Part shown: in pieces, positions 1 through 45,600 of the stretch
Layout: each line of letters starts with the position of its first letter
Position numbering within the stretch: the first letter of the stretch is position 1
DNA from: Scyliorhinus canicula
Taxonomy: Eukaryota
Direction: 5' to 3'
Assembly (NCBI RefSeq): GCF_902713615.1
Contig: NC_052158.1
Span: 40,477,729-40,541,728 of the forward strand
DNA: 64,000 nucleotides
The notes under the pieces: generated by a model
What the model saw: only the letters and a program-made list of their open reading frames with translations
Databases searched by the model: none
Told to the model about the DNA's origin: nothing
Program-made: the position numbers and the translations under genes

Positions 1-1748
1 TCGAACCTGGGATCCTGGCGCTGTGAAGCAACAGTGCTAACAACTGTGCTACCGTAGATGGAGGACAGGCTTTGGGTGGGTCAGGAGGTGAGTTACTCGC
101 CACAGATAGCCCAACCTCTGCCTTGCTCTTGCAGGCACAGTGTCTATATAGTTAGCCCAGTTGAATTTGGATCAATGGTAACCTCCAGGATGTTGATATT
201 GGGGGACTCATTGATGGTAATGCCATTGAATGTCAAGGTGAGATGGTTTGAATTCTGTCTTGTTGGAAATGGTATTGCCTGGCATTTGTACAGCCCACTA
301 CCGAAGTCAGGCTCACTGGTCTATGATTCGGTTTTCTCTCTGCCTCCCTTTTTAAATACATTAGCGACCTTGCAATCTGCAGGAACTGTTCCAGTGTCTA
401 TAAAATCTGGAAGATGACCACAATACATCCACTAATTCTCAGGCCACTTCCTTCAGTACTCTATGATAGGATTATCAGGCCGTGAGGATTTACCAGCATC
501 AATCCATCAGCTTCCCCACATCATTTCTCTACTAATACTGATTTCCTTCAGTTCCTCCCTCTCACTAAACCCTGTGATCCCCAACACAGGATTTATCAGC
601 TGAGGGAGGGTGAGGGTGGGGGTTGGTGGCTCAGTGATAATCAGCAGGAGGATTCCTTGCCCACCTTTGACCTGATGCCATGAATCTTTGTGGTCTCCCA
701 GATCAACTTCCTCTCGAATGTGCACCACCTCAATTGAACTCTGTTCTATCCTGCCATTGGAAGAATAAGGATTGGGACATTGTAAGGTATGACTATGTCA
801 GACTGTTGTTTGACTAGTCTGTGGGACAGCTTTCCCAATACTGGCACAAACCCTCAGATGTTAGAAAGGAGAACTCTGCAGGGCGATAGGACTGGTTTGC
901 CATTGTCGTTTCCAGTGTCCCTGTCAATGCCGGGTAGTCTGTCCGGTTTCTTTCTGTCTCATTGACTTGGAGCAGTTGGATGAAATGAAAAAAATGAAAA
1001 ATGAAAATCACTTATTGTCACGAGTAGGCTTCAATGAAGTTACTGTGAAAAGCCCCTAGTCGCCACATTCCGGCGCCTGTCCGGGGAGGCTGGTACGGGA
1101 ATCGAATCGTGCTGCTGGTCTGCTTTAAAAGCCAGCGATTTAGCTCAGTGAGCTAAACCGGCCCCTAGTAAAATATGCAAACTCCACAGGACAGTGACCC
1201 AGAACCGGGATCGAACGTGGGACCTCGGCGCTGTGAGGCTGTAGGGCTAACCACTGCGCCACCGTACTGGCATGGGTACAACTGAGTGTTTTGCTCGGCC
1301 TTTTCAAAGGACAGTAAAGGGTCATTACTGTGGGTCTGGAGTAAATGTAGGTCAGACTGGGCAAGAAATGGCAGATTTCTGTCCCATTCCGTTTTCATTT
1401 CATCCTGTTACTTGAATTTAAATCCCACCTGCACTCTTCTAAGAATTGAACCTGAGCATCAGTCTGGGCCTCTGGATTGATAGTCCAGTAACACTGCCAC
1501 TAAACAATTACCTCCTCTCAGGCCACCCCTCTGCTTTCCCCTGCTTCCCTCTCCATATTGCTCTCTGTAACACTATCACCTTCTCTGCTCATACTTCCTG
1601 CTCCTTTCTCCATCATTGATGCATCTCCTTCACCTCGATAGCCTTTCTCTCAAGACGAGGGTGGCACGATGGCGCAGTGGTTAGCCGAGGACCGAGGTCC
1701 GGGTTCGATCCCGGCTCTGGGTCACTGTCCGTGTGGAGTTTGCACATT

Positions 1749-2700
1749 AGACCATAAGACATAGGAGCGGAAGTAAGGCCATACGGCCCATCGAGTCCAC
1801 TCCACCATTCAATCATGGTTGATTTCAACTCCATTTACCCGCTCTCTCCCCATAGCCCTTAATTCCTCGAGAAATCAAGAATTTATCAATTTCTGTCTTA
1901 AAGACACTCAATGTCCCGGCCTCCACTGCCCTCTGTGTCAATGAACCTACCACTCTCTGGCTGAAGAAATTTCTCCTCATCTCTGTTCTAAAGTGACTCC
2001 CTTTTATTCTAAGGCTGTGCCCCCGCGTCCTAGTCTCCCCATGCTAATGGAAACAACTTCCCTACGTCCATCCTATCCAAGCCATTCATTATCTTGTAAG
2101 TTTCTATTAGATCTCCCCTCAATCTCCTAAACTCCAATGAATATAATCCCACGATCCTCAGACATTCATCGTATGTTAAGCCTACCATTCCTGGGATCAT
2201 CCGTGTGAATCTCCGCTGGACCCGCTCCAGTGCCAGTATGTCCTTCCTGAGGTGTGGGGCCCAAAATTGCTCACAGTATTCTAAATGGGGCCTAACTAGT
2301 GCTTTATAAAGCCTCAGAAGTACATCCCTGCTTTTATATTCCAAGCCTCTTGAGATAAATGACAACATTACATTTGCTTTCTTAATTACGGACTCAACCT
2401 GCAAGTTTACCTTTAGAGAATCCTGGACTAGGACTCCCAAGTCCCTTTGCACTTTATCATTATAAATTTTGTCACCGTTTAGAAATAGTCCATGCCTCTA
2501 TTCTTTTTTCCAAAGTGCAAGACCTCGCACTTGCCCACGTTGAATTTCATCAGCCACTTCTTGGACCATTCTCCTAAACTGTCTAAATCTTTCTGCAGCC
2601 TCCCCACCTCCTCAATACTACCTGCCCCTCCACCTATCTTTGTATCATCGCAAACTTGGCCAGAATGCCCCCAGTCCCGTCATCTAGATCGTTAATATAT
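1749..2700 (-). mobile_element. 5'-truncated CR1 LINE of the same subfamily, inserted into a SINE
   Basis: RT C-terminal ORF 2030-2452 and the same 3' tail as 5650-5743; absent at the matching site in the other arm (about 41775). Confidence 0.93.
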
Positions 2701-4122
2701 GGGGTGAGACCCAAGTGTCTGCTTGGGTCTCACCCCACAATCCAAACATATGCAAGGCAGGTGGATTGGCCATGCTAAATTGCCCCGTTAATTGGAAACA
2801 AAATGAATTGGGTACTTCAAATTTATTTTAAAATACCCTTCTCTCGAGTTTTCCAGTGACGGGGATGTGCTGAGTGGACGCACAGAAGGTGACTCTCTTC
2901 CTAGGAAATCAAAAATAGCGCCAGAACCAAGAAAAAAGCATACCCTCATCACTCTCTTCAATCTGCAAATGAGATATAAAATATTAACCGAAATGCCAAG
3001 CAACAGCTGTATCAGAGGCCGTAAGGAAACGAGAGGCAACTGGAGCCTGGAGAAACTGGCGAGTGAGATGGTGGACCATAAGGCGAAAAAAATCCCTGGC
3101 AGCACCTGAGCGAGAGGAGCAACAAGCCATGCAAGGAACTTCCCCTCACCAGAGGGCAGCTGGAGGAAGTTCCTCACCAGAGAGCTAAGGAGCTCAAAGA
3201 GGACATAAGACTCGGAATCCAGGTGGCGGTCAATATGGTGGTCACGGAAGCAATGGCCGCCATGTAGCTGGCCCCTCGACAAGGCAGAGAGATGACTACA
3301 GGCCGAGGAGAGCACAATTAAGGCTCATCGCCCTAGAGACAGAGATAGCAAGGTTTATGGTGGCCCAGAGCAAGCTGAAGGGAAATGTGGAAGACCAAGA
3401 GAATCAATCAAGGCGGCAGAAATTCAGAATAGTGGGACTGCCAGAGGGAAACCGAAAGGCTGGGACCACACGAACTACATAGCCAAGATCCTGGGAAACC
3501 TGGTGGGAATGAACAGCTTCCCCAGACTGCCGGAGATAGAGAGGGCTCTTAGGTTGCTCCGGCCGAAATCCACGGCCGTGGAGCAGCCGAGGGCAATAAT
3601 TGTACCGGTGCCAAGACGGGAGAGAATCCTGCAATGGGCCAGCCAGACGAGAACCTGCAACGTGGATGGACACCAGATCGATTTGTATCAGGACATTGAG
3701 ACGGACATTGGGAAAGAAGAAGAATCCAAGGCCACGCAGGGGGGGCCTGGCCCTCCCTAATTTGCTGTATTACCACTGGGAAGCCACAGCAGAGGTAGTG
3801 ATGGAACAGGTAAAGGAACTTGAAGCAGAATGAGTGAAAATGGATGAGAGTTTCTGCACAGGGACATCCCTCCGAGCCCTCGCCACAGCAGCGCTCCCAA
3901 GCCCACTAGCCAAGCACTCAACAAGCCCAGTGGTAATAGTCACGCTTCAGACGGGAACCAACTAAGACGACACATCGGTCTGACCGAAATGTCCACTGTG
4001 GATCCTCAACTACAACAATCACAGGTTGATGCCAGCCAAGATGGATGCCACCTTTAAAGGTGGAGACAGGACAGAGACACTGACAGACAGGGACTTCTAC
4101 AGAGCCAACAGACTGACAAAAC

Positions 4123-5743
4123 AATGTCAAAAAGATGGTGCTAAAAAGCTAAAAGGTCTTAAAATTGACAAATCTCCTGGCCCCGATGGGCTACACCCTA
4201 GAGTTCTGAGGGAGGTGGCTGAAGAAATAGCGGAAGCGTTGGTTGAGTTCTTTCAAAAATCACTGGAGTCAGGGAAAGTCCCGGACGATTGGAAGATCGC
4301 TGTTGTAACCCCCTTGTTCAAGAAAGGATCAAGACAAAGATGGAAAATTATAGGCCAATTAGCCTAACCTCGGTTGTTGGTAAAATTCTAGAATCGATCG
4401 TTAAGGATGAGATTTCTAAATTCTTGGAAGAGCAGGGTCGGATTAGAACAAGTCAACATGGATTTAGTAAGGGGAGGTCGTGCCTGACGAACCTGTTAGA
4501 ATTCTTTGAGGAGGTGACAAGTAGGTTAGACCAGGGAAACCCAGTGGATGTGGTCTATCTGGATTTCCAAAAGGCCTTTGATAAGGTGCCACACAGGAGG
4601 CTGCTGAGTAAGGTGAGGGCCCATGGTGTTCGAGGTGAGCTACTGGCATGGGTTGAGGATTGGCTGTCTGACAGAAGGCAGAGAGTTGGGATAAAAGGTT
4701 CTTTTTCGGAATGGCAGCCGGTGACCAGCGGTGTCCCACAGGGTTCAGTGTTGGGGCCGCAGCTGTTCACCATATATATTAATGATCTGGATGAAGGGAC
4801 TGGGGGCATTCTAGCGAAGTTTGCCGATGATAAGAAGTTAGGTGGTCAGGCAGGTAGTGCTGAGGAAGTGGGGAGGCTGCAGAAGGATCTAGACAGTTTG
4901 GGAGAGTGGTGCAGGAAATGGCTGATGCAATTCAACGTGAGAAAATGTGAGGTCTTGCACTTTGGAAAAAAGAATCCAAGCATAGACTACTTTCTAAAAG
5001 GTGAGAAAATTCATAATGCCAAAGTACAAAGGGATCTGGGAGTGCTAGTCGAGGATTCACTAAAGGTAAACATGCAGGTTGAATCTGTGATTAAGAAAGC
5101 GAATGTAATGTTGTCATTTATCTCAAGAGGGTTGGAATATAAAAGCAGCGATGTGCTACTGAGCCTTTATAAGGCTCTGGTTAGGCCCCATTTGGAGTAC
5201 TGTGTCCAGTTTTGGGCCCCACATCTCAGGAAGGACATACTGGCACTGGAGCGTGTCCAGCGGAGATTCACACGGATGATCCCTGGAATGGCGGGTCTAA
5301 CATATGAGGAACGGCTGAGGATCCTGGGATTGTATTCATTGGAGTTTAGAAGGTTAAGGGGAGATCTAATAGAAACTTACAAGATAATACATGGCTTAGA
5401 AAGGGTGGACGCAAAGAAAACTGTTTCCGTTAGGCGAGAAGACAAGGACCCGTGGGCACAGCCTTAGAATTAGAGGGGGTAAATTCAGAACAGAAATGCG
5501 GAGACATTTCTTCAGCCAGAGAGTGGTGGGCCTGTGGAATTCATTGCCGCGGAGTGCAGTGGAGGCCGGGACGCTAAATAGCTTCAAGGCAGAGATAGAT
5601 AAATTCTTGATGTCGCGAGGAATTAAGGGCCACGGGGAGAATGCTGGTAGGTGGAGTTGAAATGCCCATCAGCCATGATTGAATGGCGGAGTGGACTCGA
5701 TGGGCCGAATGGCCTTACTTCCACTCCTATGTCTTATGGTCTT
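4123..5743 (+). mobile_element. Young 5'-truncated CR1 LINE (RT domain and 3' UTR)
   Basis: ORF 4289-5467 with KSPGPDG, YRPISLTS, DFQKAFD, GVPQGSVLGP and FADD; CR1-type tail; AAAAC duplication on both sides; absent at the matching site in the other arm (about 40360). Confidence 0.95.
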
Positions 5744-6344
5744 AAAACTATAGGAGCTGACAAAGAGGCTTCGACTGACCAGGGGGAATGGGCAGCAAGG
5801 TGGCGCAGTGGTTAGCGCTGCTGCCTCATGGTGCTGAGGTCCCAGGTTCAATCCCGGCCCTGGGTCACTGTCTGTGTGGAGTTTGCACATTCTCCCCGTG
5901 TTTGCGTGGGTTTCTCTCCCACAACCCAAAGATGTGCAGGTAGAATAATTGGTTATGCTAAATTGCTCCTTAACTGGAAAAAATTAATTGGGTACTCTAA
6001 ATGTTTTAAAAAACTAACTAGGGGGAAACGAGTTACGACACATGCAATTCAAAAACTTCCTCCGAAGGGAACCGACGACATACCCACAGCGCCGGGACAA
6101 TCATTATCAGAAGAACTGTTGGACGTGGGCAACTTGAGGGGGGGAACCACGGGACTTATCTGGCCGACTGTTGGGACCGGCACGCTCCCCACTAGGCGAG
6201 ACAAGAGAAAAATGGGAGAAAGAGCCAGGGATAGAAATAGTGGGAACACTGGAGCGAAGCACTGAACAGGATCAACTCCCCCTGCACATGCACACAGCTA
6301 AGCCTTACGCAGCTGAAAGTGGTACACAGCACACAACTAACCAG

Positions 6345-7126
6345 AACCTGAAAGAACATTTGTTCCTTGGAGGTGGAGGACAAATGTGGACGGTGCCAGA
6401 GAGGCCCGGCCAACATGTTCTGGGCATGCCCCAGATTTGTTGAGTTCTGGACGAATTTCTTTGAGGTAATGTCCAAGGTTGTGGGGGTGAGGGTGCCAAG
6501 TCCAAAAGTGGCAATCTTCGGGGTAGCAGACGAGCCAGAACTCGTCTTGGGGAGAGGGGCCGCAGCCTTGCCTTTACCTTCCTAATCGGCCGCCCAAAAA
6601 TCCTGCTCGACTGGTGATTAGCAGCACCGCCCACAGCTGTGGACTGGCTGCCCAACCTGTCGGAATTTCTCCACCTGGAAAAAATCAATTCACCATCCGG
6701 GGGTCGGAAGAGGGCTTCCACAAGACGTGGAAGCCATTCACCAACTTGTTCCAGAACCTGTTGTAGCCAACAGCCAATAGAGCAAAGGGAAGGAGCGGGG
6801 GTCATAGAGGGACCACAGACACCAAGGGGAGAGGGAGGGGGAGAAAATAGGGAGGCACAGACACTGATCACTCCCCCCAGACCAAAAGTTTGTAAATACA
6901 GGTAGCCGACGAGGCTTGATTTATCACTGTGTAATATATGTGTCACTATATGGCCCTGCTGTGTCGGGAAATGAAGAACCAACAAGGAAAACATTCTGTA
7001 CAAGAAAAATAGGGGAAGGGGGTTATTTTTAATGTTTGATCCTTGTAAATTGTATTTGGTTTGTACAGTTTTGTTTATGGTGTATTGTATAAAATGAGAA
7101 CTCTTCATAAAACATTTTCAAAAAAA
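6345..7126 (+). mobile_element. L1-clade ORF2 C-terminus and A-rich 3' end (mirror about 38605-39390, - strand)
   Basis: CGRC..GPANMFWACP zinc-knuckle-like motif, followed by a 3' UTR and A-rich tail. Confidence 0.7.
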
Positions 7127-7439
7127 TACCTTTCGCTCGTCCTCCATAACTGTCCCTTTTCTCTCTCCTCCTCACTCACTTTCCCTTCCCCCTCTCTTCT
7201 GTGTGTCTCTTTTTAATCAAGTTGCTTAACTTCTCCCCCTCACTCTTATCCCTCATCTTCCGATATCTTTAATATTTGAGCTGAGAGAGTGGATATCCTC
7301 AAAACTAGAGGATGTGGAAGACCTCAGGAGTGGGAATAAAGCAGGAAGTACAAACCAGGAATGGCCAATGAGCCAATATGGGGTTGAGTGGGAAAAGTGG
7401 AAGCAGTCGGGTTGGGAGAGTGAGAAAAACAACATAGAA

Positions 7440-8070
7440 TCATAGAATTTACAGTGCAGAAGGAAGCCATTCGGCCCATCGAGTCTGCACCGGCCCTTGG
7501 AAAGTGCACCCAACTTAAGCCCATGCCTCCACCCGATCCCTGTAACCCAGCAACCCCACCCAATGTTTGGACAATTTAGCATGGCCAATCCACCATGGGA
7601 AGCACGGTAGCACAGTGGCTAGCACAGCTGGCCCACAGCGCCACGGTCCCAGGGTCGATTCCGGCCCAGGCCACTGTCCGCCCGGAGTCCGCACGTTCCC
7701 CCCGTGTATGCGTGGGCCTCCTCGGTTTCCTCCCACAAGTCCCGAAAGACGTGCTTGTTCGATGAATTGGACATTTTATATTTTCCCTCAGTGTACCTGA
7801 ACAGATGCCGGAGTGTGGTGACTAGGGGATTTTCACAGTATCTTCATGGCAATGTTTAATATAAGCCTACTTGGGAAAATAATAATGAAGATTATTATAA
7901 TATTATTACCTAACGTGCACATCTTTGGGAGAGGAAACCAGAGCACCCGGAGGAACCCACACACACACACACGGGAGAAAGCGCAAACTCCATACAGACA
8001 GCAACCAAGGCCGGAATCGAACCTGGGGACCCTGTAGCTGCAAAGCCAACCACTGTGCCGCCGTGCCATG
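7440..8070. mobile_element. Cluster of older HE1-like SINEs (others at about 1-56, 1000-1260, 1660-1748 plus 2701-2830, 5780-6010 and their mirrors)
   Basis: Shared B-box GGTTCGAT-type heads and CCACACTCCGGC..GGGGCTTTTCACAGT tails. Confidence 0.8.
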
Positions 8071-8154
8071 AAATATTATTTCAATGGGCAGTAGCAATAC
8101 CTCCACCCCCAGTACCCCGATGTTAGTGGAAGATTCCGGTTTCCTTAGCCATAC

Positions 8155-8415
8155 CAACTGTCTGGTTCATCAATTTCAGGATCGTATTCATGGTCCCCAT
8201 CATTACATCGTAATGTTTCTTTCCCAGGACATTGAGGTAATCCCACTCTTCCACACTGAGATAGTCTGTAATGAATTGGTGTCTGGAAACCATCTGAAGG
8301 GTGTCACTGTCGTAATGGATAACATTACTCCATTGAGCATTGCCACACCCGGCAAACTCAGGGCAACCTGGAATGCCGGAGATTCTGGTGTACAGCACAG
8401 TAAAGGAATCAATAT
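8155..8415 (-). pseudogene. Second (inverted) MHC class I copy, alpha1 exon with compensating +1/-1 indels (pseudogene, variant allele or sequencing error)
   Basis: 261-nt inverted copy of 37311-37571 with intact splice sites. An extra G (GCCGGGT) and a missing C (TTATCCAT) shift about 11 codons; about 8 substitutions. Confidence 0.7.
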
Positions 8416-8949
8416 CTGTGAAATAAACAAAGGAAGGGATTGGTTAATGAGGAATTAACATTTCCCAAATGGTACTAACTAAACAAGATGAATCGGGACC
8501 ACACAATGACAATCTCCTACAGTCTGTCACTTTATATTAACACCAGAATCCTCCCTGATCGATAAACTAGTTCACTGCAGCAAAGGAAATATCAGCAGCA
8601 GCCTATGGATAAGCTTTAGTTTCCGGAGGGTGGACAATGGGAGGCCAGCCAGGAGATCATTGGAAAATCAAATGTTCTGGGGTCAAAATCCTGAGTGAGA
8701 AAATTGGCAGCACATGAGGGAGGGGTTGAGTTGGAAGAAAGAAATTGAACTGGAATCTGGTGGTCTTGGTGATGGAGCGGCTGGAATGAGGACTTTAGGA
8801 ATGCAGTCACTGGAGGAAACAGGACAATGAATTTGTACACAGCAAGATCCCACAATGGCAGGGCAAATGACCAGGTAGCCTGGTTTAGGCTGCCCACGAG
8901 GGGCACATCAAACAGGACATCACACTACCGATCACTCGCTTTCCACCAG

Positions 8950-11945
8950 GGAGAGTGAGCGGAAATGGGAGAGCAGAAGGTACGGGAAGAGAGCTGTACA
9001 GGGAGAGCGATTGGTACGCGGACGAGCGAGCGGTATGGGGAGAGTGAGCGGTACAGGAGAGTGAGCGAACAGGGAGAGTGAGTAGTTCAGGGACAGTGAG
9101 CACGGTGGGGAGTAAGCACACAGGGAGAGTGAGTAGTACAGGGAGAGTGAGCATACAGGGAGAGCGAGCGGTATGGAGAGAGTGAGCACGATGGGGAATG
9201 TGAGCATACAGGGAGAGTGAGTAGCCTGGGGAGAGTGAATGGTATGGGGAGAGTGAATGGTATGGGGAGGACGGCGAGTGAGCGGTATGGGGGAGACGTG
9301 AGCGGTATGGGACAGTGAGAGGTATGGAGAGAGTGAGCGTATGGGGAGAGTGAGCGGTATGGGGAGAAGTGAGAGGTATGGGGACAGTGAGAGGTATGGA
9401 GAGAGTGAGCGGTATGGGGAGAGTGAGCGGTATGGGGGAGAGTGAGCGGTATGGGGAGATGTGAGCGGTATTGGGGAGATGTGAGCGGTATGGGAGAGAG
9501 TGAGCGGAATGGGGAGAGTGAGCGGAAGGGAGGGGAGAGTGAACGGTATGGGGGGGTGAGCATTATGGGGAGAGTGAGGCGGTATGGGGAGAGTGAGCGG
9601 TATGGGGGGGTGAGCATTAGGGGAGAGTGAGCGGTATGGGGAGAGTGAGCGGTATGGAGAGAGTGAGCAATGGGAGAGAGAGTGAGCGGTATGGGGAGAG
9701 TGAGCGTTATGGAGAGAGTGAGCGGTATGGGGAGAGTGAGCGGTATGGGGAGAGTGAGCGGTATGGAGAGAGTGAGCAGTATGGGGAGAGTGAGCGGTAT
9801 GGAGAGGCGTGAGCGGTATGGGGAGAGTGAGCGGTATTGAGAGAGGTTAGCAGTATGGGGAGAGTGAGCGGTATGGAGAGAGTGAGCGGTATGGGGAGAG
9901 TGAGCGGTATGGGGAGAGTGAGCGGTATGGGGAGAGTGAGCGGTATGGAGAGAGTGAGCGGTATGGAGAGAGTGAGCGGTATGGAGAGAGTGAGCGTTAT
10001 GGGGGAGAGTGAGCGGTATGGGGAGAGTGAGCGGTATGGAGAGAGTGAGCGGTATGGAGAGAGAGTGAGCGGTATGGAGAGAGTGAGCGGTATGGGGGAG
10101 GAGTGAGCGGTATGGGGAGAGTGAGCGGTATGGGGAGTGAGCGGTGTGGAGAGTGAGCGGTATGGGGAGAGTGAGCGGTATGGAGAGAGTGAGCGGTATG
10201 GGGAGAGTGAGCGGTATGGGAGAGTGAGCGGTATGGGGAGAGTGAGCGGTATGGGGAGTGAGCGGTATGGAGAGAGTGAGCGGTATGGGAGAGTGAGCGG
10301 TATGGGAGAGTGAGCGGTATGGGGAGTGAGCGGTATGGGGAGTGAGCGGTATGGGGAGAGTGAGCGGTATGGGGAGAGTGAGCGGTATGGAGAGTGAGCG
10401 GTATGGGAGAGTGAGCGGTATGGGGAGAGTGAGCGGTATGGAGAGATGAGCGGTATGGGAGAGTGAGCGGTATGGGAGAGTGAGCGGTATGGAAGAGTGA
10501 GCGGTATGGAGAAGTGAGCGGTATGGAGAGTGGAGCGGTATGGGAGAGTGAGCGGTATGGGAGAGTGAGCGTATGGAGAGTGAGCGGTATGGGAGAGTGA
10601 GCGGTATGGGGAGAGTGAGCGTATGGAGAGAGTGAGCGGTATGGAGAGATGAGCGGTATGGAGAGAGTGAGCGGTATGGAGAGAGTGAGCGGTAATGGAG
10701 AGAGTGAGCGGTATATGGGAGAGTGAGCGGTATGGAGAGAGTGAGGCGGTATGGAGAGAGTGAGCGGTATGGGAGAGTGAGCGGTATGGGGAGAGTGAGC
10801 GGTATGGGGAGAGTGAGCGGTTATGGAGAGAGTGAGCGGTATGGGGAGAAGTGAGCGTAATGGAGAGAGTGAGCGGTATGGAGAGAGTGAGCGGTATGGA
10901 GAGAGTGAGCGGTAGGAGAGAGTGAGCGGTATGGGGAGAGGTGAGCGGTATGGGGGAGAGTGAGCGGTATGGGGAGAGTGGAGCGGTATGGAGAGAGTGA
11001 GCGGTAGGGGGAGAGTGAGCGGTATGGGGAGAGTGAGCGGTATGGGGAGAGTGAGAAGTATGGGGAGAGTGAGCAGTGTAGGGAGAGTGAGCAGTATGGG
11101 GAGAGTGAGCGTATGGGAGAGTGAGCGGTATGGAGAGAGTGAGCGGTATGGAGAGAGTGAGCGGTATGGGGAGAGTGAGCGGTATGGGGAGAGTGAGCGG
11201 TATGGGGAGAGTGAGAAGTATGGGGAGAGTGAGCAGTGTAGGGAGAGTGAGCAGTATGGGGAGAGTGAGCGGTATGGAGAGAGTGAGCGGTATGGAGAGA
11301 GTGAGCGGTATGGAGAGAGTGAGCAGTATGGGGAGAGTGAGCGGTATGGAGAGAGTGAGCGGTATGGGGAGAGTGAGCGGTATGGGGAGAGTGAGCGGTA
11401 TGGAGAGAGTGAGCGGTATGGAGAGAGTGAGCGGTATGGAGAGAGTGAGCGGTATGGGGAGAGTGAGCGGTATGGGGAGAGTGAGCGGTATGGAGAGAGT
11501 GAGCGGTATGGAGAGAGTGAGCGGTATGGAGAGAGTGAGCAGTATGGGGAGAGTGAGCGGTATGGGGAGAGTGAGCGGTATGGAGAGAGTGAGCGGTATG
11601 GAGAGAGTGAGCGGTATGGGGAGAGTGAGCGGTATGGGGAGAGTGAGCGGTATGGGGAGAGTGAGAAGTATGGGGAGAGTGAGCAGTGTAGGGAGAGTGA
11701 GCAGTATGGGGAGAGTGAGCGGTATGGAGTGAGCGGTATGGAGAGAGTGAGCAGTATGGGGAGAGTGAGCAGTGTAGGGAGAGTGAGCGGTATGGGGAGA
11801 GTGAGCGGTATGGGGAGAGTGAGCAGTGTAGGGAGAGTGAGCAGTATGGGGAGAGTGAGCGGTATGGAGAGAGTGAGCGGTATGGAGAGAGTGAGCAGTA
11901 TGGGGAGAGTGAGCAGTGTAGGGAGAGTGAGCGGTATGGGAAGAG
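8950..11945. repeat. Mirror copy of the 18-bp minisatellite (GGGGAGAGTGAGCGGTAT)n
   Basis: Reverse complement of 34130-36780; unit lengths are irregular in 9990-11110. Confidence 0.97.
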
Positions 11946-13039
11946 TGCGATTCGGAATGAGCAACAGAAAGACAGATGTGAGAAATTGCCGAGATAGTGA
12001 GCAATATGTGGAGTTATGTGGCGAGTGAAGGAAGGAAGAATACGAGGGAAGAAAACTGGAAAGAGAATGAATTGTGGGAAATATGATCAGGATGGAGCAA
12101 GGGGGCTTTGCAAATGTGGGAAGGAGGACTTCTGATGGACAGATTGTGAAGAATGATACAACAGAGGGTTTGGTGGGAGATAAAGGACAGAATTGTCCTG
12201 CTGTTCGCTGGTGGATGAATCCACTGATCCCACCGGGATCAGAAACCTGCCGGTATAAAATCCAGTTGCGCTTGTCCCTGTGGTGGGCTAATGGCGGCCC
12301 AGCTTTCCTGCTGGCTGGCAGTGTGAATGGCAATCACTTCCAGGAATGCTCATTAAAGCAGTTGCCTGCCGGAATCCCATCAGGCCTTTCAATGCTGCCA
12401 GATGTGTGAATAACTTTCTGCCTTAGTGCTGTGCCACGTCTGATGTGCTGTTCACTCTGCTAGGAAGTTCCCGCCCTCCTTCTTCACGCTGAGCTGTTCT
12501 TCATGATCAGCACTGTGTTCCTGAACCCATGGACTCTCCTGTCTCACTACCTGGGATTCGCATAGTGCCTGGGGTTGGGCAGTATAGGGGCCTCCAGCCC
12601 TCCGGTGCCACACATGGCAGTGTCTATCTGGACCTGCACCGTTCTGCTGGGCCCATGCAGCCAACCCAACAAAGGTCTGGAATTTTACTGGGGGTGGAGT
12701 GCGAGTTGAGGTTGGGGAAGGGATGTGTGGTGGTGGCTTGATGAAGACAAGGAGTTGGGACAATATGGAAGTAGGGTTGTGCCAGGGGTTGGGGATGGGC
12801 AAAAGCTCACGATGGCAGGCAGAGGACAGGGAGATGGAGGAAGATAAATAATGGAAGGCAGAGGGAACATCATGGGGTGGGGAGCTGGACCTTGACAAAG
12901 CTGCATGAAATGCTCACAAGGGGGGTTAAAAGGACACTACAGCTATTAGTTTTGCAGCCTTCTGGAGTCCCTGAGCCACGTCAATGTTGAGTGTTTTAGG
13001 CTGCACTCCCTTTTTGGTTTCTTAACAAAGTTGTTGTTA

Positions 13040-13450
13040 AAGTTTTGTTTGCACTTCAGCCCCACGCTTCTGATCTACTGGCATCCGGAGCGGGGGGTGG
13101 AGGGGAGGACGGAGGGCCTCCTCGTGAACCTGCTCCTGGGCCTGGCAAAGTGTGCCATAAAGAGGTCCAGGCAGCGGGCGACCATAGGGGCCGTCCGACC
13201 GGACTGTCGGCCCCTCTTCTGTGGCTTTCGTGGCCCGGATATCCCTGGAGAGGGAACATGCGGTGTCCACGGATACACTCGACGCCTTCCGTGCTCTGTT
13301 GGTACCACAGGGGTTAGACTTCTTTACCAACCCCAATTTTCAGATTTTGGTTTGATGTTTCGAAGTTTCTGTTCCTACATTTTCTTTTGGGCTGTGCTCC
13401 GTTTGTTCATTGCAGGATCGGCCGCCTTTTATTTATCTCTTCATTAGTTT
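13040..13450 (+). mobile_element. Tx1-like LINE 3' fragment (mirror about 32625-33030, - strand)
   Basis: LLVNLLLGLAKCAI...LEREHAVST..LDAF, resembling the Tx1-type ORF2 C-terminus. Confidence 0.6.
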
Positions 13451-28550: not shown

Positions 28551-28829
28551 TGTGTGGTATGGATATGAGCTCTGCCATTGGTGCAGAGCATGGCTCCCCA
28601 TTGGCTCTGGCTGGTCATGTGCCACTCGTCCGATTGGTTGGGACTAGTCATGTGACTGCTCTCCAATTGTTCTAGAGGCAAGTAAGCCCCGCCTCCGAGG
28701 TGGGGTATAAGTACCCAGAGTTCCCAGCGATCAGCCTTACTCTGTAGCCGACCACCGGGCTAACAACTAGCTGATTAAATCCACAGTTCGGATCCTAATT
28801 GTGTCTTGAGTCAAATTGATGGTACATCA
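28551..28829 (+). repeat. 3' LTR of the gypsy element
   Basis: Direct repeat of 23015-23294 preceded by the polypurine tract. Confidence 0.95.
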
Positions 28830-30296: not shown

Positions 30297-30306
30297 TCTC
30301 ATTTCT

Positions 30307-30317
30307 GTTTCACTTTC
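30307..30317 (+). promoter_or_regulatory. ISRE / IRF-binding element of the class I promoter
   Basis: GTTTCACTTTC matches the ISRE consensus GTTTCNNTTTC, about 270 bp upstream of the ATG. CCAAT/ATTGG boxes at about 30408 and 30553. Confidence 0.7.
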
Positions 30318-30581
30318 TGAAACGCAACCTGTCTGAGTTTAATCTGCCTGGTAACTGGTGACTGAAGGTTGTTTATTTCTTTAACTGGGTAATTTTCTGA
30401 GACGAACCAATCATCCAGCCTCTGGTTCAGGAAATGATTAGACCTGGAGTTAAACATTAAAATGGAGTCTGAGTAAATTTATTATTTTAATGTGTCTCCC
30501 AGTCTGTAAACAGGATTAGTTTCCTCCTCAGAGAGTTTGATTCCCAGTCACTGATTGGAACAGGAACAGTGGATTCCCAGA

Positions 30582-30633
30582 ATGTTCCTGATCCTTTTCT
30601 CCATCTCCCTGTGTTTTTCCTGGGTCTCTCCCG
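30582..30633 (+). CDS. MHC class I exon 1, signal peptide MFLILFSISLCFSWVSP
   Basis: Hydrophobic 17-codon leader ending G|gtaagt (phase 1), just downstream of ISRE and CCAAT motifs. Confidence 0.85.
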
Positions 30634-36600: not shown

Positions 36601-39600
36601 TACCACTCACTCTCCCCATCGTGCTCACTGTCCCTGAACTACTCACTCTCCCTGTTCGCTCACTCTCCTGTACTGCTCACTCTCCCCATACCGCTTGCTC
36701 GTCCGCGTACCAATCGCTCTCCCTGTACAGCTCTCTTCCCGTACCTTCCGCTCTCCCATTTCCGCTCACTCTCCCTGGTGGAAAGCGAGTGATCGGTAGT
36801 GTGATGTCTTGTTTGATTTGCCCCTCGTGGGCAGCCTAAACCAGGCTACCTGGTCATTTGCCCTGCCATTGTGGGATCTTGCTGTGTACAAATTCATTGT
36901 CATGTTTCCTCCAGTGACTGCATTCCTAAAGTCCTCATTCCAGCCGCTCCATCACCAAAACCACCAGATTCCAGTTCAATTTCTTTCTTCCAACTCAACC
37001 CCTCCCTCATCTGCTGCCAATTTTCTCACTCAGGATTTTTGACCCCAGAACATTTGATTTTCCAATTATCTCCTGGCTGGCCTCCCATTGTCCACCCTCC
37101 GGAAACTAAAGCTTATCCATAAGGCTGCTGCTGATATTTCCTTTGCTGCAGTGAACTTGTTTATCAATCAGGGAGGATTCTGGTGTTAATATAAAGTGAC
37201 AGACTGTAGGAGATTGTCATTGTGTGGTCCCGATTCATCTTGTTTAGTTAGTACCATTTGGGAAATGTTAATTCCTCATTAACCAATCCCTTCCTTTGTT
37301 TATTTCACAGATATTGATTCCTTTACTGTGCTGTACACAGGAATCTCCGGCATTCCTGGTTACCCTGAGTTTGCCGGTATGGCAATGCTCAATGGAGTAA
37401 TATTATCCCATTACGACAGTGACACCCTTCAGATGTTTTCCAGACACCAATTCATTACAGACTATCTCAATGTGGAAGAGTGGGATTACCTCAATGTCCT
37501 GGGAAAGAAACATTACGATGTAATGATGGGGACCATGAATACGATCCTGAAATTGATGAACCAGACAGTTGGTATGGCTAAGGAAACCGGAATCTCCCAC
37601 TAACATGGGGGTACTGGGGGTGGAGGTATTGCTACTGCCCATTGAAATGATATTTCATCGCAAGGCGGCACTGTGGTTGGCTTCGCAGCTACAGGGTCCC
37701 AGGTTCGATTCCGGCCTTGGTTGCTGTCTGTATGGAGTTTGCGCTTTCTCCCGTGTGTATGTGTGTGGGTTTCCTCCGGGTGCTCTGGTTTCCTCCCAAA
37801 GATGTGCACGTTAGGTATTATAATAGATATTATAATAATCTTCATTATTATTTTCCCAAGTAGGCTTATATTAAACATTGCCATGAAGATACTGTGAAAA
37901 TCCCCTAGTCACCACACTCCGGCATCTGTTCAGGTACACTGAGGGAAAATATAAAATGTCCAATTCATCGAACAAGCATGTCTTTCGGGACTTGTGGGAG
38001 GAAACCGAGGGAGGCCCACGCATACACGGGGGGAACGTGCGGACTCCGGACGGACAGTGGCCTGGGCCGGGAATCGACCCTGGGACCGTGGCGCTGTGGG
38101 CCAGCTGTGCTAGCCACTGTGCTACCGTGCTTCCCATGGTGGATTGGCCATGCTAAATTGTCCAAACATTGGGTGGGGTTGCTGGGTTACAGGGATCGGG
38201 TGGAGGCATGGGCTTAAGTTGGCTGCACTTTCCAAGGGCCGGTGCAGACTCGATGGGCCGAATGGCTTCCTTCTGCACTGTAAATTCGATGATTCTATGT
38301 TGTTTTTCTCACTCTCCCAACCCGACTGCTTCCACTTTTCCCACTCAACCCCATATTGGCTCATTGGCCATTCCTGGTTTGTACTTCCTGCTTTATTCCC
38401 ACTCCTGAGGTCTTCCACATCCTCTAGTTCTGAGGATATCCACTCTCTCAGCTCAAACATTAAAGATATCGGAAGATGAGGGATAAGAGTGAGGGGGAGA
38501 AGTTAAGCAACTTGATTAAAAAGAGACACACAGAAGAGAGGGGGAAGGGAAAGTGAGTGAGGAGGAGAGAGAAAAGGGACAGTTATGGAGGACGAGCGAA
38601 AGGTATTTTTTTGAAAATGTTTTTATGAAGAGTTCTTCATTTTATACAATACACCATAAACAAAACTGTACAAACCAAATACAATTTACAAGGATCAAAC
38701 ATTAAAATAACCCCCTTCCCCTATTTTTCTTGTACAGAATGTTTTCCTTGCTGGTTCTTCATTTCCCGACACAGCAGGGCCATATAGTGACACATATATT
38801 ACACAGTGATAAATCAAGCCTCGTCGGCTACCTGTATTTACAAACTTTTGGTCTGGGGGGAGTGATCAGTGTCTGTGCCTCCCTATTTTCTCCCCCTCCC
38901 TCTCCCCTTGGTGTCTGTGGTCCCTCTATGACCCCCGCTCCTTCCCTTTGCTCTATTGGCTGTTGGCTACAACAGGTTCTGGAACAAGTTGGTGAATGGC
39001 TTCCACGTCTTGTGGAAGCCCTCTTCCGACCCCCGGATGGTGAATTTGATTTTTTCCAGGTGGAGAAATTCCGACAGGTTGGGCAGCCAGTCCACAGCTG
39101 TGGGAGGTGCTGCTAATCGCCAATCGAGCAGGATGTTTGGGTGGCCGATTAGGAAGATAAAGGCAAGGCTGCGGCCCCTCTCCCCAAGACGAGTTCTGGC
39201 TCGTCTGCTACCCCGAAGATTGCCACTTTTGGACTTGGCACCCTCGCCCCCACAACCTTGGACATTACCTCAAAGAAATTCGTCCAGAACTCAACAAATC
39301 TGGGGCATGCCCAGATCATGTTGGCCGGGCCTCTCTGGCACCGTCCACATTTGTCCTCCACCTCCAAGGAACAAATGTTCTTTCAGGTTCTGGTTAGTTG
39401 TGTGCTGTGTACCACTTTCAGCTGCGTAAGGCTTAGCTGTGTGCATGTGCAGGGGGAGTTGATCCTGTTCAGTGCTTCGCTCCAGTGTTCCTACTATTTC
39501 TATCTCTGGCTCTTTCTCCCATTTTTCTCTTGTCCCGCCTAGTGGGGAGTGTGCCGGTCCCAACAGTCGGCCAGATAAGTCCCGTGGTTCCCCCCCCCCC

Positions 39601-42600
39601 CCCCCTCAAGTTGCCCACGTCCAACAGTTCTTCTGATAATGATTTTCCCGGCGCTGTGGGTATGTCGTCGGTTCCCTTCGGACGAAGTTTTTGAATTGCA
39701 TGTGTCGTAACTCGTTTCCCCCTGGTTAGTTTTTTAAAAACATTTAGAGCACCCAATTATTTTTTTCCAATTAAGGAGCAATTTAGCGTGACCAATTATT
39801 CTACCCTGCACATCTTTGGATTGTGAGGGCGAAACCCGATCCCTGTAACCCAGCAACCCCACCCAATGTTTGGACAATTTAGCATGGCCAATCCACCATG
39901 GGAAGCACGGTAGCACAGTGGCTTGCACAGCTGGCCCACAGCGCCACGGTCCCAGGGTCGATTCCCGGCCCAGGCCACTGTCCGTCCGGAGTCCGCACGT
40001 TCCCCCCCCGTGTATGCGTGGGCCTCCCTCGGTTTCCTCCCACAAGTCCCGAAAGACATGCTTGTTCGATGAATTGGACATTTTATATTTTCCCTCAGTG
40101 TACCTGAACAGATGCCGGAGTGTGGTGACTAGGGGATTTTCACAGTATCTTCATGGCAATGTTTAATATAAACTTTGGATTGTGAGGGCGAAACCCACGC
40201 AAACACGGGGAGAATGTGCAAACTCCACACAGACAGTGACCCAGGACAAGGATCGAACCTGGGACCTCGGCACCATGAGGCAGCAGTGCTAACCACTGCG
40301 CCACCTTGCTGCCCATTCCCTCTGGTCAGTCGAAGCCTCTTTGTCGGCTCCTATAGTTTTGTCAGTCTGTTGGCTCTGTAGAAGTCCCTGTCTGTCAGTG
40401 TCCTCTGTCCTGTCTCCACCTTTTAAAGGTGGCATCCATCTTGGCTGGCATCAACCTGTGATTGTTGTAGTTGAGGATCCATAGTGGACATTTCGGTCAG
40501 ACCGATGTGTCGTCTTAGTTGGTTCCATGTCCAAAGCGTGACTATTACCACTGGGCTTGTTGAGTGCTTGGCTGGTGGGCTTGGGAGCGCTGCTGTGGCG
40601 AGGGCTCGGAGGGATGTCCCTGTGCAGGAACTCTCCTCCATTTTCACTCATTCTGCTTCAAGTTCCTTTACCTGTTCCATCACTACCTCTGCTGTGGCGT
40701 CCCAGTAGGAATACAGAAAATTAGGGAGGGCCAGGCCCCCCCTGCGTGGCCTTGGATTCTTCTTCTTTCCCAATGTCCATCTCAATGTCCTGATACAAAT
40801 CGGTCTGGTGTCCATCCACGTTGCAGGTTCTCGTCTGGCTGGCCCATTGCAGGATTCTCTCCCGGTCTTGGCACCGGTACAATTATTGCCCTCGGCTGCT
40901 CCACGGCCGTGGATTTCGGCCGGAGCAACCTAAGAGCCCTCTCTATCTCCGGCAGTCTGGGGAAGCTGTTCATTCCCACCAGATTTCCCAGGATCTTGGC
41001 TACGTAGTCCGTGTGGTTCCAGCCTTCGGTTCCCTCTGGCAGTCCCACTATTCTGAATTTCTGCCGCCTTGATTGATTCTCTTGGTCTTCCACATTTCCC
41101 TTCAGCTTGCTCTGGGCCACCATAAACCTTGCTATCTTTGTCTCTGGGGCGATGAGCCTTAATTGTGCTTTCCTCGGCCTGTAGTCATCTCTCTGCTTTG
41201 TCGAGGGCCACCTACATGGCGGCCATTGCTTCCGTGACCACCACATTGACCGCCACCTGGATTCCGAGTCTGATGTCTGCTTTGAGCTCCTTTAGCTCTC
41301 TGGTGAGGAACTTCCTCCAGCTGCCCTCTGGCGAGGGGAAGTTCCTTGCATGGCTTGTTGGCTCCTCTTGTTCAGGTGCTGCCAGGGATTCTTCGTCTTG
41401 TGGGTCCACCATCTCACTCGCCAGTTTTTCCAGGCTCCAGTTGCCTCTTGTTTCCTTACGGCCTCTGATACAGCTGTTGCTTGGCATTTCGGTTAATATT
41501 TTATATCTTAATTTGTAGATTGAAGAGAGTGATGAGGGTATGCTTTTTTTCTTGGTTCTGGCGCTATTTTTGATTTCCTAGGAAGAGAGTCACCTTCTGT
41601 GCGTCCACTCAGCACATCCCCGTCACTGGAAAACTTGAGAGAAGGGGTATTTTAAAAATAAATTTGAAGGACCCAATTAATTTTCTTTCCAATTAAGGGG
41701 CAATTTAGCATAGCCAATCCACCTGCCTTGCACATGTTTGGAGTGTTGGGGTGAGACCCAAGCAGACACGGGGAGAATGTGCAAACTCCACACGGACAGT
41801 GGCCCGGGGCCGGGATCGAACCTGGGACCTCGGTCCTCGGCTAACCACTGCGCCATCGTGCCACCTCGTCTTGAGAAAAAGGCTATCGAGGTGAAGGAGA
41901 TGCATCAATGATGGAGAAAGGAGCAGGAAGTATGAGCAGAGAAGGTGATAGTGGTTACAGAGAGCAATATGGGGAGGGAAGCAGGGGAAAGCAGAGGTGG
42001 TGGCCTGAGAGGAGGTAATTGTTTAGTGGCAGTGTTACTGGACTGATGCTCAGGTTCAATTCTTAGGAAGAATGCAGGTGGGATTTAAATTCAAGTAACA
42101 GGATGAAATGAAAAAGGAATGGGACAGAAATCTGCCATTCTTGCCCAGTCTGACCTACATTTACTCCAGACCCACAGTAATGACCCTTTACTGTCCTTTG
42201 AAAAGGCCGAGCAAAACACTCAGTTGTATCCCATGCCAGTACGGTGGCGCAGTGGGTTAGCCCTACAGCCTCACAGCGCCGAGGTCCCACGTTCGATCCC
42301 GGTTCTGGGTCACTATCCGTGTGGAGTTTGCATATTTTGCTAGGGCTGGTTTAGCTCACTGAGCTAAATCGCTGGCTTTTAAAGCAGACCAAGCAGGCCA
42401 GCAGCACGGTTCGATTCCTGTACCAGCCTCCCCGGACAGGCGCCGTAATGTGGCGACTAGGGGCTTTTCACAGTAACTTCATTGAAGCCTACTCGTGACA
42501 ATAAGTGATTTTCATTTTTTATTTTTTTTCATTTCATCCAACTGCTCCAAAGTCAATGAGACAGAAAGAAACCGGACAGACTACCCGGCATTGACAGGGA

Positions 42601-45600
42601 CACTGGAAACGACAATGGCAAACCCAGTCCTATCGCCCCTGCAGAGTTCTCCTTTCTAACATCTGAGGGTTTGTGCCAGCATTGGGAAAGCTGTCCCACA
42701 GACTAGTCAAACAACAGTCTGACATAGTCATACCTTACAATGTCCCAATCCTTATTCTTCCAATGGCAGGATAGAACAGAGTTCAATTGAGGTGGTGCAC
42801 ATTCGAGAGGAAGTTGATCTGGGAGACCACAAAGATTCATGGCATCAGGTCAAAGGTGGGCAAGGAATCCTCCTGCTGATTATTACTGAGCCACCAACCC
42901 CCACCCTCACCCTCCCTCAGCTGATAAATCCTGTGTTGGGGATCACAGGGTTTAGTGAGAGGGAGGAACTGAAGGAAATCAGTATTAGTAGAGAAATGAT
43001 GTTGGGGAAGCTGATGGGATTGATGCTGGTAAATCCTCACGGCCTGATAATCCATATCATAGAGTACTGAAGGAAGTGGCCTGAGAATTAGTGGATGTAT
43101 TGATGGTCATCTTCCCAGATTTTATAGACACTGGAACAGTTCCTGCAGATTGCAAGGTCGCTAATGTATTTAAAAAGGGAGGCAGAGAGAAAACCGAATC
43201 ATAGACCAGTGAGCCTGACTTTGGTAGTGGGCTGTACAAATGCCAGGCAATAACCATTTCCAACAAGACAGAATTCAACCATCTCACCTTGACATTCAAT
43301 GGCATTACCATCAATGAGTCCCCCAATATCAACATCCTGGAGGTTACCATTGATCCAAAATTCAACTGGGCTAACTATATAGACACTGTGCCTGCAAGAG
43401 CAAGGCGGAGGTTGGGCTATCTGTGGCGAGTAACTCACCTCCTGACCCACCCCAAAGCCTGTCCTCCATCTACGGTAGCACAGTTGTTAGCACTGTTGCT
43501 TCACAGCGCCAGGATCCCAGGTTCGATTCCCGGTTTGGGGCACTGTCTCTGCAGAGTTTGCCTATGTCTGTGTGGGTTTCCTCCGGGTGATCCGGTTGCC
43601 TCCCACAGGTCCCGAAAGACATGGGGCGTGATTCTCCGCAAATGCGGAGAGTCCTGAAGGCTGCCGTGAAACCGGCCGTGTTTCACGGCAGCCTCCGCGC
43701 CCCCTCCCGGGACCCGATTCTGCTCCCCGGTCGGGGCTAGCAGCGGGGCCCCGTGAACTTCGGCATCGCGGGCTTAGCGAATTTCGCTAAGCCCGCGCGC
43801 CAAAGTTAGCGACAGCTGACGCATATGATGATGTCAGCCGCGCATGCGCGGATTGGACGGCTCCAACCCGCGCATGCGAGGATGACGTCATCACGCATAT
43901 GCGTTAAACCCGCGCATGCGCGGGCCGTTATGTCCCTCAGTAGCCCCACGGACTGATACAGCGGGGCGGCGGAGGAACAAAGAGTGCCCACCGATCACGG
44001 GCCCATGGCACCCGTGGTGCGGCCGTGCCAATCGGTGCCATGGTTCCCCAGAACGGCACTTTGCGGCCGTTTTTACGAACTGTGATAGCAGGTGTGTTGG
44101 AGTTCTTAAAAACGGCCGTAAAGGCCTGGGAACTCGGCCCATCGGCCAGGGGAGAATCGCTGTTTGCCGTAAAAAACTGTGAGCAGCGATTCGTGTCGGG
44201 GGGAGGGGGGGGGGGGGGGGAATAGCGGGATGTCGGGAAGGCCCTTACGCTATTCTCCGACCCATCGTGGGGGGCGGAGAATCGCGCCCATGCTGTTTGG
44301 TAATTTAGAAGTTCTGAATTTCTCTCTCTGTGCACCCTAACAGGCGCCGGAATGTGGTGACGAGGGGCTTTTCACAGTAACTTCATTGCACTTTTAATGT
44401 AAGCCTACTTGTAACAATAAAGATTATTATTATTTCAAAGCATAAGACAGGAGTGTCATGGAATTCTCTCCACTTGTATGGATGAGTGCAGCTCCAACAA
44501 GAAGCTTGACAACATCCAGGACAAAATAATCCACTTGATTGCCCCCCATCCACAAACACCTGAAGCAAAGTTTTGCGGCCTCAATCAATGACAGGATTTT
44601 CCGCTCCAACCAAAGTTGGTCTTTGGAAAGCTTCCTGTATTTTACGCCCCCACCCACACCGCGTTGAAGCGTTAAATTACCACCCATGGGAACACCAGCA
44701 TCTGGAGGTTCCCCTCCAAGTCACTCACCATCCTGACTTGGAAATGTATCACCGCCGTTCCTTCACTCTCGCTGGGTTAAAATCCTGGAACTCCCTTCCT
44801 AACAGCACAATGGGTGTACCTACATCTCAGAAACTGCAGCGGTTCAAGAAGGCAACTCACCACCACCTTCTGTAGGGCAATAAATGCTGGCCTAACCAGT
44901 AACGCCCACATGCTGAAAATGAATAAAAGAAGGATTATTTTCCAAAAAGAACAGTAATTGGAACACGTCATTGGAATATAAAGCTAATATACTGTGTAGA
45001 ACCCTGGACTTGCAACATACCCAAAATTGATTTCTACTGACTTGAATTTAGTGGAAAATCCAGTGGGATGTAGAATCCCCATAGCCTCCATATCCAGTGG
45101 ATTAGGCCCCATTTCCTTGTCTGAATACCTTATCTGAATTGTGAAAAGACTTTTCTAATCAACAGTGAATTATTGGTTATTGATCTCTGGTGTCTGACAG
45201 GATTTCACACTTTTCAATGGATTCGGTCTGTCGAGGTCACTGAAGACGGCTCCATTAAGAGATCGATGAGGTTTGGATTTGATGGAAAGGATTATATTAG
45301 TTTAGAGCCAGACAGGATGAGATGGGTCGCATCCAATCACATCGCAGTGAAGACTAAAGAGAAATGGGATTCGGATCAATCTTGGAATGAGCACTGGAAA
45401 TGGCAGATGGAAGTAGAACTGATTAGCCTCTTAAGGAAATATTTAAAAATTGGAAAGGAATTTCTCAAAAAGAAAGGTATTGATTTGAGTTTTGATCCAT
45501 GTTCTGATCTAACTTCACTGATCTATCAAACCGTTCTCCCATTCCATTCAGTGTCTGTCTATTGTTTGTGTTTTCACCCTTTCCCATTACAGTTCAGCCT

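Follow-up and report, generated by a model that had tools for sequence, protein, structure and literature searches.

Results

A class I gene unit in two mirrored copies

We analysed a 64,000-nucleotide stretch of small-spotted catshark chromosome 13 (NC_052158.1, ~40.478–40.542 Mb; hereafter the window), which lies within a multicopy MHC-Ib cluster beside B2M (41.36 Mb) and BRD2. Self-BLASTN and a MAFFT pair alignment showed that the first 18,152 positions are the reverse complement of positions 27440–43526. This confirms the inverted duplication described in the initial annotation, and carries it slightly beyond the inner limits given there (18093 and 27511). In each arm, tblastn with shark proteins located two exons of a nonclassical MHC class I gene, the leader and alpha1; a regular-expression search for class I motifs missed these exons. 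The gene unit is MHC-Ib, probably of the UEA type. As had been reported (~15 kb), the two leader exons point away from each other; they are identical in sequence and 15.1 kb apart (Table 1).

The right copy corresponds to LOC119975572, which is entered as MHC-Ib in the published chromosome 13 gene table. Its alpha2, alpha3 and transmembrane exons (45197–47269) lie beyond the visible arm, and their left partners fall outside the window. The exon map, together with matches to PF00129 and PF07654, shows a class I architecture of alpha1/alpha2 plus a C1-set alpha3 domain. The alpha2 exon is 62–75% identical to shark homologs, and its translation is cysteine-free, that is, without the canonical disulfide cysteines. 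In the left copy, the pair of compensating indels in alpha1 shifts 11 codons off the conserved frame, and a protein search with this frame returned no candidate within its length range.

The published gene table has no minus-strand entry for the left copy. The same table shows mixed gene orientations across the cluster; a second pair annotated head to head, with 16.6 kb between its members, also comes from this assembly. In the basking shark, the homolog has a class I neighbour on the same strand, 5 kb upstream, and at L001, the one homolog locus with DNA, no class I gene was found alongside. Copy number is reported to be highly variable among shark MHC-Ib lineages (Verissimo et al, 2023; PMC10751288).

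Table 1. Features of the window. Positions are numbered from the first nucleotide of the window; arms are named left and right as drawn in the assembly.
Feature	Position	Strand	Remarks
Left arm	1–18152	−	End of a separate contig; 5′ part of class I gene; extends leftward out of the window
Left-only CR1 fragment	1749–2714	−	Right-arm counterpart: 7 nt (CTCCCCG)
Left-only 5′-truncated CR1 (CR1-b)	4126–5743	+	Open RT frame; target-site duplication AAAAC
Left alpha1 exon	8150–8416	−	8 substitutions; +1/−1 indel pair 32 nt apart
Left intron-1 18-bp minisatellite	8949–11947		167.5 copies
Left leader exon	15437–15490	−	MFLILFSISLCFSWVSP; GT donor
Left upstream 77-bp repeat	15762–16141		4.9 copies
Left copy of the Gypsy insertion	16770–18152	−	3′ LTR 16770–17049 plus part of integrase; cut by contig end
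500-N scaffold gap	18153–18652		Flanks discontinuous
Satellite module, start of right contig	18653–21435	+	15-bp array, 59-bp array, 352-bp flank
Complete Gypsy element	23015–28829	+	LTRs 23015–23294 and 28550–28829; 3′ part within right arm
Right arm	27440–43526	+	5′ part of annotated MHC-Ib gene LOC119975572
Right upstream 77-bp repeat	29458–30298		10.9 copies
12-bp ISRE-like motif	30308–30319	+	TTTCACTTTCTG; ~270 bp upstream of right leader exon
Right leader exon	30582–30635	+	Identical to left leader exon
Right intron-1 18-bp minisatellite	34127–36775		147.5 copies
Right alpha1 exon	37310–37576	+	Frame as conserved in shark homologs
Right-only local inverted duplicate, 335 bp	39838–40172		Copy of 37866–38197, 99.1% identical
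Right alpha2 exon	45197–45475	+	PF00129; outside visible arm
Right alpha3 exon	45580–45870	+	C1-set, PF07654
Open frame with right connecting/transmembrane exon	47003–47269	+	Hydrophobic stretch; layout of homolog P0001
Two tandem satellite-module copies	54953–61471	+	Downstream of right gene; direct orientation to 18653–21435

Arm homology stops at a contig end inside a Gypsy element

Both arms carry the same Gypsy insertion, and they therefore descend from one unit. Site patterns in the LTRs date the split of the arms to soon after this insertion, with ~4% divergence at the LTR, and 11–16-bp indels distinguish the integrase part of the two arms (MAFFT); one of these may be the right-only integrase deletion named in the initial annotation. 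The homology runs within the Gypsy up to the final base ahead of the gap, in agreement with the earlier observation that the left arm ends exactly there. On the left flank of the gap lies antisense Gypsy integrase, on the right flank a 15-bp satellite, and at least ~4.4 kb of Gypsy would be missing at the gap if the left copy was full length. The arms are over 18 kb long, with 9.4 kb or more of spacer between them.

We take the gap to mark a 3D-DNA join, and the only link between the arms appears to be this one Hi-C scaffold join at a contig end within the shared element. Underlying the assembly are 63x PacBio CLR data, processed with Falcon-unzip, purge_dups, scaff10x, Bionano, 3D-DNA/Juicebox Hi-C at 17x, Arrow and FreeBayes (PMC11979771). 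The left contig survived both purge_dups and manual curation (PMC11979771).

In its outer half (1–8940), the left contig shows an excess of error-like derived 1-bp deletions: among the single-base indels, the base is missing from the left arm in 42 cases and from the right arm in 9. Third copies polarised 12 such sites, and at ~9 of these the ancestral state was that of the right arm. The published marks of false duplication include an assembly gap that separates the two copies and a larger number of erroneous k-mers (Ko et al, 2022; PMC9516828).

Structural differences and mosaic divergence between the arms

The initial annotation had held that the arms are not a single sequence assembled twice, on the basis of two CR1 insertions confined to the left arm, a templated insertion and an ISRE confined to the right, and unequal VNTR lengths. 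All of these differences were recovered (Table 1). The right arm holds an empty site for CR1-b; the right-only insertion is an inverted copy of nearby sequence, the 12-bp ISRE-like motif is missing from the left arm, and both the 18-bp and the 77-bp arrays differ in copy number. A look-up of the open frame in the left-only CR1 gave no match. The two arms are thus genuine and distinct copies of a single nonclassical MHC class I gene unit of the catshark. CR1-b, the 335-bp duplicate and the ISRE-like indel also serve as markers that separate the arms.

The arms differ by 244 substitutions (ts:tv 1.8), and their mean substitution divergence outside the repeats is 1.8–2.1%. BLAST identities of 93–96% count gaps as well; substitutions alone correspond to ~98% identity. 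The initial annotation had put substitutions at a few percent; the mean is ~2%, and divergence is strongly mosaic, ranging from 0.2 to 5.2% per 500 bp (heterogeneity p=6e-16). A low-divergence tract (0.2–1.2%) covers the promoter, the leader and the 5′ part of intron 1 (12.3–16.3 kb) and is adjoined by blocks of 3–5%. Genome-wide pi in another shark is 0.002, so that the divergence between the arms is roughly tenfold higher. The ~2% mean, the 3–5% blocks and the two transposon insertions together fit paralogs better than alleles.

Arm-specific words in public samples

Words of each arm, including arm-specific 31-mers, were scored for presence in run contigs, which hold no depth. The likely source sample, S1, contained 0.51–0.53 of the left-arm words and 0.45–0.48 of the right-arm words, and it seems to hold the arm-specific 31-mers of both arms at similar rates. 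Run X17 contained 0.79 of the right-arm words versus 0.49 of the left-arm words; these shares fit left-specific words being held at an estimated 0.06–0.27. Runs X26 and X27 probably under-represent left-specific words as well. If the runs of study P6 are RNA, the X17 skew reflects expression and not genotype. An attempt to derive dosage from word-retention rates against genome-wide contig totals was dropped, as the answer hinges on repeat collapse.

Discussion

We consider that the palindrome as drawn is probably not the true structure, in which case the left contig represents either a retained haplotype or a flipped or misplaced paralog. Of the two readings in the initial annotation, one was a real palindromic pair and the other a divergent haplotype that scaffolding had inserted in inverted orientation; we weigh both and add a third, and its view that the arms are distinct is borne out. 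The single likeliest case, which we hold only tentatively, is a heterotype false duplication, in which the left contig would be an alternative or copy-number haplotype that was retained. The reading added here, in which Hi-C scaffolding flipped or misplaced the contig of a true paralog nearby on the same chromosome, seems unlikely. The lack of a left-copy entry in the published gene table favours our preferred explanation, as do the direct orientation of the satellite modules and the same-strand class I neighbour of the basking-shark homolog. Against it count the LTR patterns, which place the separation of the arms not long after the Gypsy inserted, the mixed orientations and second head-to-head pair in the cluster (annotated in the same assembly), and the fact that purge_dups and curation left the contig in place.

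A single ancestral MHC-Ib unit that already carried the Gypsy insertion gave rise to both arms. After the split, the left copy acquired the two CR1 insertions, the copies came to differ in the 335-bp inverted duplicate and the ISRE-like motif, both found only on the right, and both repeat arrays changed length. According to our preferred explanation, later tract-wise exchange of sequence left the 0.2–5% mosaic, and the drawn head-to-head adjacency comes from one Hi-C join at the contig end inside the shared Gypsy. The distinctness of the arms, their common origin, the mosaic and the place of the join are shown; the nature of the join and the haplotype status are inferred.

A true palindromic paralog pair, with two divergently transcribed MHC-Ib genes on one chromosome, arms of 18 kb or more and a spacer no shorter than 9.4 kb, is possible but doubtful. 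Its arms would be partly alike through arm-to-arm gene conversion, and its presence may be polymorphic. Real evolutionary events distinguish the arms (a target-site duplication with its empty site, a local duplicate), their divergence is well above typical shark heterozygosity, and the low-divergence tract at 12.3–16.3 kb beside blocks of 3–5% resembles conversion tracts; the mixed orientations in the cluster, the other divergent pair of similar spacing, and the about equal word sets in S1 are further points in its favour. However, no sequence joins the arms, and the inner end of the homology coincides with a contig end inside the shared Gypsy, which makes a fixed palindrome less likely. The excess of error-like 1-bp deletions at 1–8940 of the left contig and the under-representation of left-specific words in at least one sample (X17, probably also X26 and X27) argue in the same direction, and the left copy is missing from the published table. 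A real palindrome polymorphic for presence, in which UEA-type genes would swap promoter and leader tracts by gene conversion and one copy would have lost the ISRE-like element, we regard as somewhat unlikely. The proposal that the inverted pair is a substrate for gene conversion and copy-number change stands for gene conversion and not for copy-number change, because inverted repeats favour spacer inversion and gene conversion.

We rejected as highly improbable a purely technical duplicate, whether one molecule had entered the assembly a second time or a palindromic PacBio read chimera had been turned into sequence. False palindromes as long as a raw read (7–17 kb) can occur in CLR assemblies (PMC9516828), and the left arm does show numerous 1-bp deletions. 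Such an origin is contradicted by the length of the arms (more than 18 kb) and of the spacer (9.4 kb or more), and by the structural differences, namely a CR1 with a target-site duplication, a second CR1, the 335-bp duplicate, the repeat-length changes and the 244 substitutions. Moreover, Illumina-type contigs of S1 appear to hold left-specific words.

Counts of shark nonclassical class I genes, and claims about their copy number, depend on assemblies of this kind. Should the left copy prove to be a retained haplotype, the reference would contain one unit too many and a palindrome that does not exist. Should it be real, one MHC-Ib copy is missing from the published chromosome 13 map, and the locus would offer a natural instance of gene conversion between immune genes in inverted orientation; a real polymorphic palindrome would illustrate in a shark how nonclassical class I genes are partly homogenised and their regulation rewired. 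Markers that distinguish the arms are now defined, whichever reading is true.

Large palindromes, such as those of primate sex-chromosome ampliconic regions, are kept alike by arm-to-arm gene conversion and have an arm identity above 99.9%. The catshark locus shares with them inverted, gene-bearing arms and a mosaic divergence with near-identical tracts, but its arms are only ~98% identical (94–96% with indels included) and are joined solely by a scaffold gap. With the artefact of chimeric palindromic PacBio reads (PMC9516828) it has in common an inverted repeat in a CLR-based assembly, whereas the spacer, arms that exceed a raw read and the many true structural differences set it apart. By its coordinates, on which two independent offsets agree, the window belongs to the multicopy shark MHC-Ib cluster (UDA/UEA; PMC10751288), although the left copy is missing from the published gene table. 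Finally, the catshark locus shares with heterotype false duplications (Ko et al, 2022; PMC9516828) two diverged copies on one scaffold with a gap between them, homology that stops where a contig ends, a surplus of error-like differences in one copy, and high polymorphism. It departs from them in its divergence (~2%, up to 5%) and its two transposon insertions, which would be a high level of difference for alleles.

Mirrored class I copies flank an assembly gap

Self-comparison of the window recovered a chain of inverted homology in four segments, pairing 1-1748 with 43526-41776, 2715-4125 with 41769-40353, 5908-16141 with 39837-29919, and 15762-18093 with 29836-27511. A pairwise MAFFT alignment carried the homology on to the final base ahead of the only N run in the window (18153-18652), where position 18152 aligns with approximately 27440. 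Given this chain and its extension, the mirrored arms are real, confirming the inverted duplication flanking the gap that was proposed in the initial annotation; on its inner side the left arm stops at a plain contig end.

Exons were mapped by tblastn with shark class I proteins (Table). The leader exons of the two genes do not differ in sequence; they point in opposite directions and lie 15.1 kb apart, in agreement with the divergent leaders about 15 kb apart described previously; the remaining exons of the left gene fall outside the window. The right alpha2 exon is 62-75% identical to shark proteins labelled "class I histocompatibility antigen", and only 68-72% identical to the four other catshark paralogs that we retrieved, so that the split between left and right copies looks far younger than theirs. 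The window was placed at about 40,477,686-40,541,685 of NC_052158.1 (chr13). The right copy corresponds to LOC119975572, a plus-strand gene that Verissimo et al. 2023 (PMC10751288) label MHC-Ib in their supplementary gene table for chr13, whereas the same table contains no minus-strand gene at the place of the left copy. The region belongs to a large MHC-Ib cluster adjoining B2M and BRD2, in which UDA is single-copy and UEA multicopy (PMC10751288). Downstream of the right gene, a plus-strand open frame of 296 aa is adjoined by another of 320 aa (48201-50047), neither with a Pfam match, the second being acidic and repetitive.

Features of the two arms (window coordinates)
Feature	Position	Strand	Evidence or remark
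Right gene, leader exon	30582-30635	+	tblastn
Right gene, alpha1 exon	37310-37576	+	tblastn
Right gene, alpha2 exon	45197-45475	+	tblastn, Pfam MHC_I
Right gene, alpha3 exon	45580-45870	+	tblastn, Pfam C1-set
Right gene, transmembrane frame	~47.0-47.3 kb	+	
Left gene, leader exon	15490-15437	-	tblastn
Left gene, alpha1 exon	8416-8150	-	tblastn
CR1-a	1749-2714		left-only
CR1-b	4126-5743		left-only; open RT frame; target-site duplication AAAAC
335-bp piece	39838-40172		right-only; inverted copy of 37866-38197, 99.1%
Complete Gypsy copy	23015-28829		protease, RT, RNase H, integrase

The arms are distinct sequences of common origin

That the arms are not one sequence assembled twice, as had been argued from the sequence alone, was borne out by the two CR1 insertions (the right arm having a clean empty site for CR1-b), the 335-bp piece, an ISRE-like motif in the right promoter region, TTTCACTTTCTG, which the left arm lacks, and repeat lengths (167.5 copies left versus 147.5 right of an 18-bp minisatellite in intron 1, and 4.9 versus 10.9 of an upstream 77-bp repeat). 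Across 11.8 kb outside repeat arrays we counted 244 substitutions (2.07%; ts:tv 156:88). Their rate per 500 aligned bases ranged from 0.2% to 5.2% (heterogeneity p=6e-16); it peaked at the Gypsy end and reached its minimum across 12.3-16.3 kb, which covers the promoter, the leader and the 5' stretch of intron 1. Such mosaic divergence would be expected both from allelic recombination and from gene conversion between paralogs.

Both arms carry a Gypsy insertion at the identical site. The complete copy has 280-bp LTRs that are 95.3% alike, an open RNase H-integrase frame of 406 aa (27028-28245) and the repeat GGGAGAGAGAAG on each side, whereas all that remains in the left arm is the 3' LTR (16770-17049) with a portion of the integrase. 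The arms differ by ~4% at the LTR. Among the three LTRs, 7 sites set the 5' LTR apart, 5 are particular to the left arm and 6 to the right, which places the split of the arms shortly after the insertion.

Single-base indels were lopsided in the left contig's outer half: 42 were missing in the left versus 9 in the right across 1-8940, as against 9 versus 10 across 11951-18152, and in 1-1748 they were as numerous as substitutions. Third copies of the same repeat family polarised the right-arm state as ancestral at ~9 of 12 indel sites. Since sister sequences should accumulate indels equally, the outer deletions look like residual long-read consensus error. Being limited to this half, they also indicate that consensus quality varies along the contig. 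The imbalance bears on the left alpha1 exon, where a +1 and a -1 indel, separated by 32 nt (8316-8348), put 11 codons off the homolog-conserved frame; the left copy may truly have decayed here, or the exon may simply be poorly polished.

Arrangement of the left contig

A 500-N gap is a sign of a 3D-DNA join, and the flanks here are discontinuous, with antisense integrase on the left and a 15-bp satellite on the right. If the left Gypsy is complete, the gap must conceal at least ~4.4 kb. Judged by its sequence, the window sets neither the order nor the orientation of the left contig. For the assembly, 63x PacBio CLR data were processed with Falcon-unzip and purge_dups; scaffolding used scaff10x, Bionano and then 3D-DNA/Juicebox with 17x Hi-C, and the result was polished by Arrow and FreeBayes and manually curated (PMC11979771).

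At the start of the right contig (18653-21435) stands a ~3-kb module in which a 15-bp array and a 59-bp array are combined with a 352-bp flank. This module recurs twice in tandem, without change of orientation, at 54953-61471, 3' of the right gene. Its spacing would fit head-to-tail units of ~40 kb with the left contig flipped, and the module may lie at the boundaries of such units. A basking-shark homolog has a class I neighbour on the same strand, 5 kb upstream. However, published tables of the catshark and white-shark clusters include mixed gene orientations, which counts against a head-to-tail layout, and a further divergent catshark pair is annotated 16.6 kb apart (LOC119976118/LOC119976117), albeit in the same assembly. 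The window's right end is occupied by a highly regular 41-bp satellite (61693-64000; 56 copies, 96% matches) that continues beyond it.

Public runs were compared by the share of arm 31-mer words present; 32% of left words (1-8900) are common to the right arm and 28% lie within the left-only CR1s, and 44% of right words are common to the left arm. S1, the likely source sample, contained 0.51-0.53 of left and 0.45-0.48 of right words, consistent with both arm-specific sets being present at similar rates. In run X17 the shares were 0.79 right versus 0.49 left (left-specific words estimated at 0.06-0.27, upper bound <0.5), a skew that would reflect expression rather than genotype if the runs are RNA. 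Runs X26 and X27 (right words 0.54 and 0.52) are absent among the four same-study runs listed for the left arm, which fits right-only runs if that listing is ordered by rank. Sample S3 (2024, catshark label; X6-X9, X20) gave 0.23 left and 0.10 right, which is the cross-species baseline for both arms; this animal may lack the unit altogether or carry a very different version of it, or the runs may be other than whole-genome DNA.

We tentatively favour, with less than even confidence, a left contig that is a retained alternative or copy-number haplotype. The gap and contig end between the arms, the error-rich left copy, the skewed word shares among samples, the polymorphic locus and the apparent youth of the split all point this way. 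In contrast, the ~2% mean divergence, the 3-5% blocks and the two transposon insertions suit paralogs, the divergence because genome-wide pi is only 0.002 in the epaulette shark (mutation rate 7e-10 per generation; PMC10587355), and the left contig also outlasted purge_dups and curation. The same observations would serve a true palindrome as assembled, which we regard as only slightly less probable than the retained haplotype, and a true paralog whose contig was flipped or misplaced, which seems unlikely. A purely technical duplicate is highly improbable.

If the palindrome is real, its inverted arms would permit gene conversion, and recombination between them could invert the spacer; the copy-number change previously suggested does not follow, as inverted arms alone would not drive it. 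The left copy would then be a weaker or dead partner, because it lacks the ISRE-like element and its alpha1 exon is possibly damaged.

The left copy missing from the published table is new, as are the markers that distinguish the arms; the right gene, its family and the cluster have already been published. Inverted duplication and false duplication are each familiar phenomena. For the latter, Ko et al. 2022 (PMC9516828) name four signs: a gap separating the two copies, half depth, linked reads that are discordant, and 1-copy k-mers. A gap likewise separates the catshark arms.
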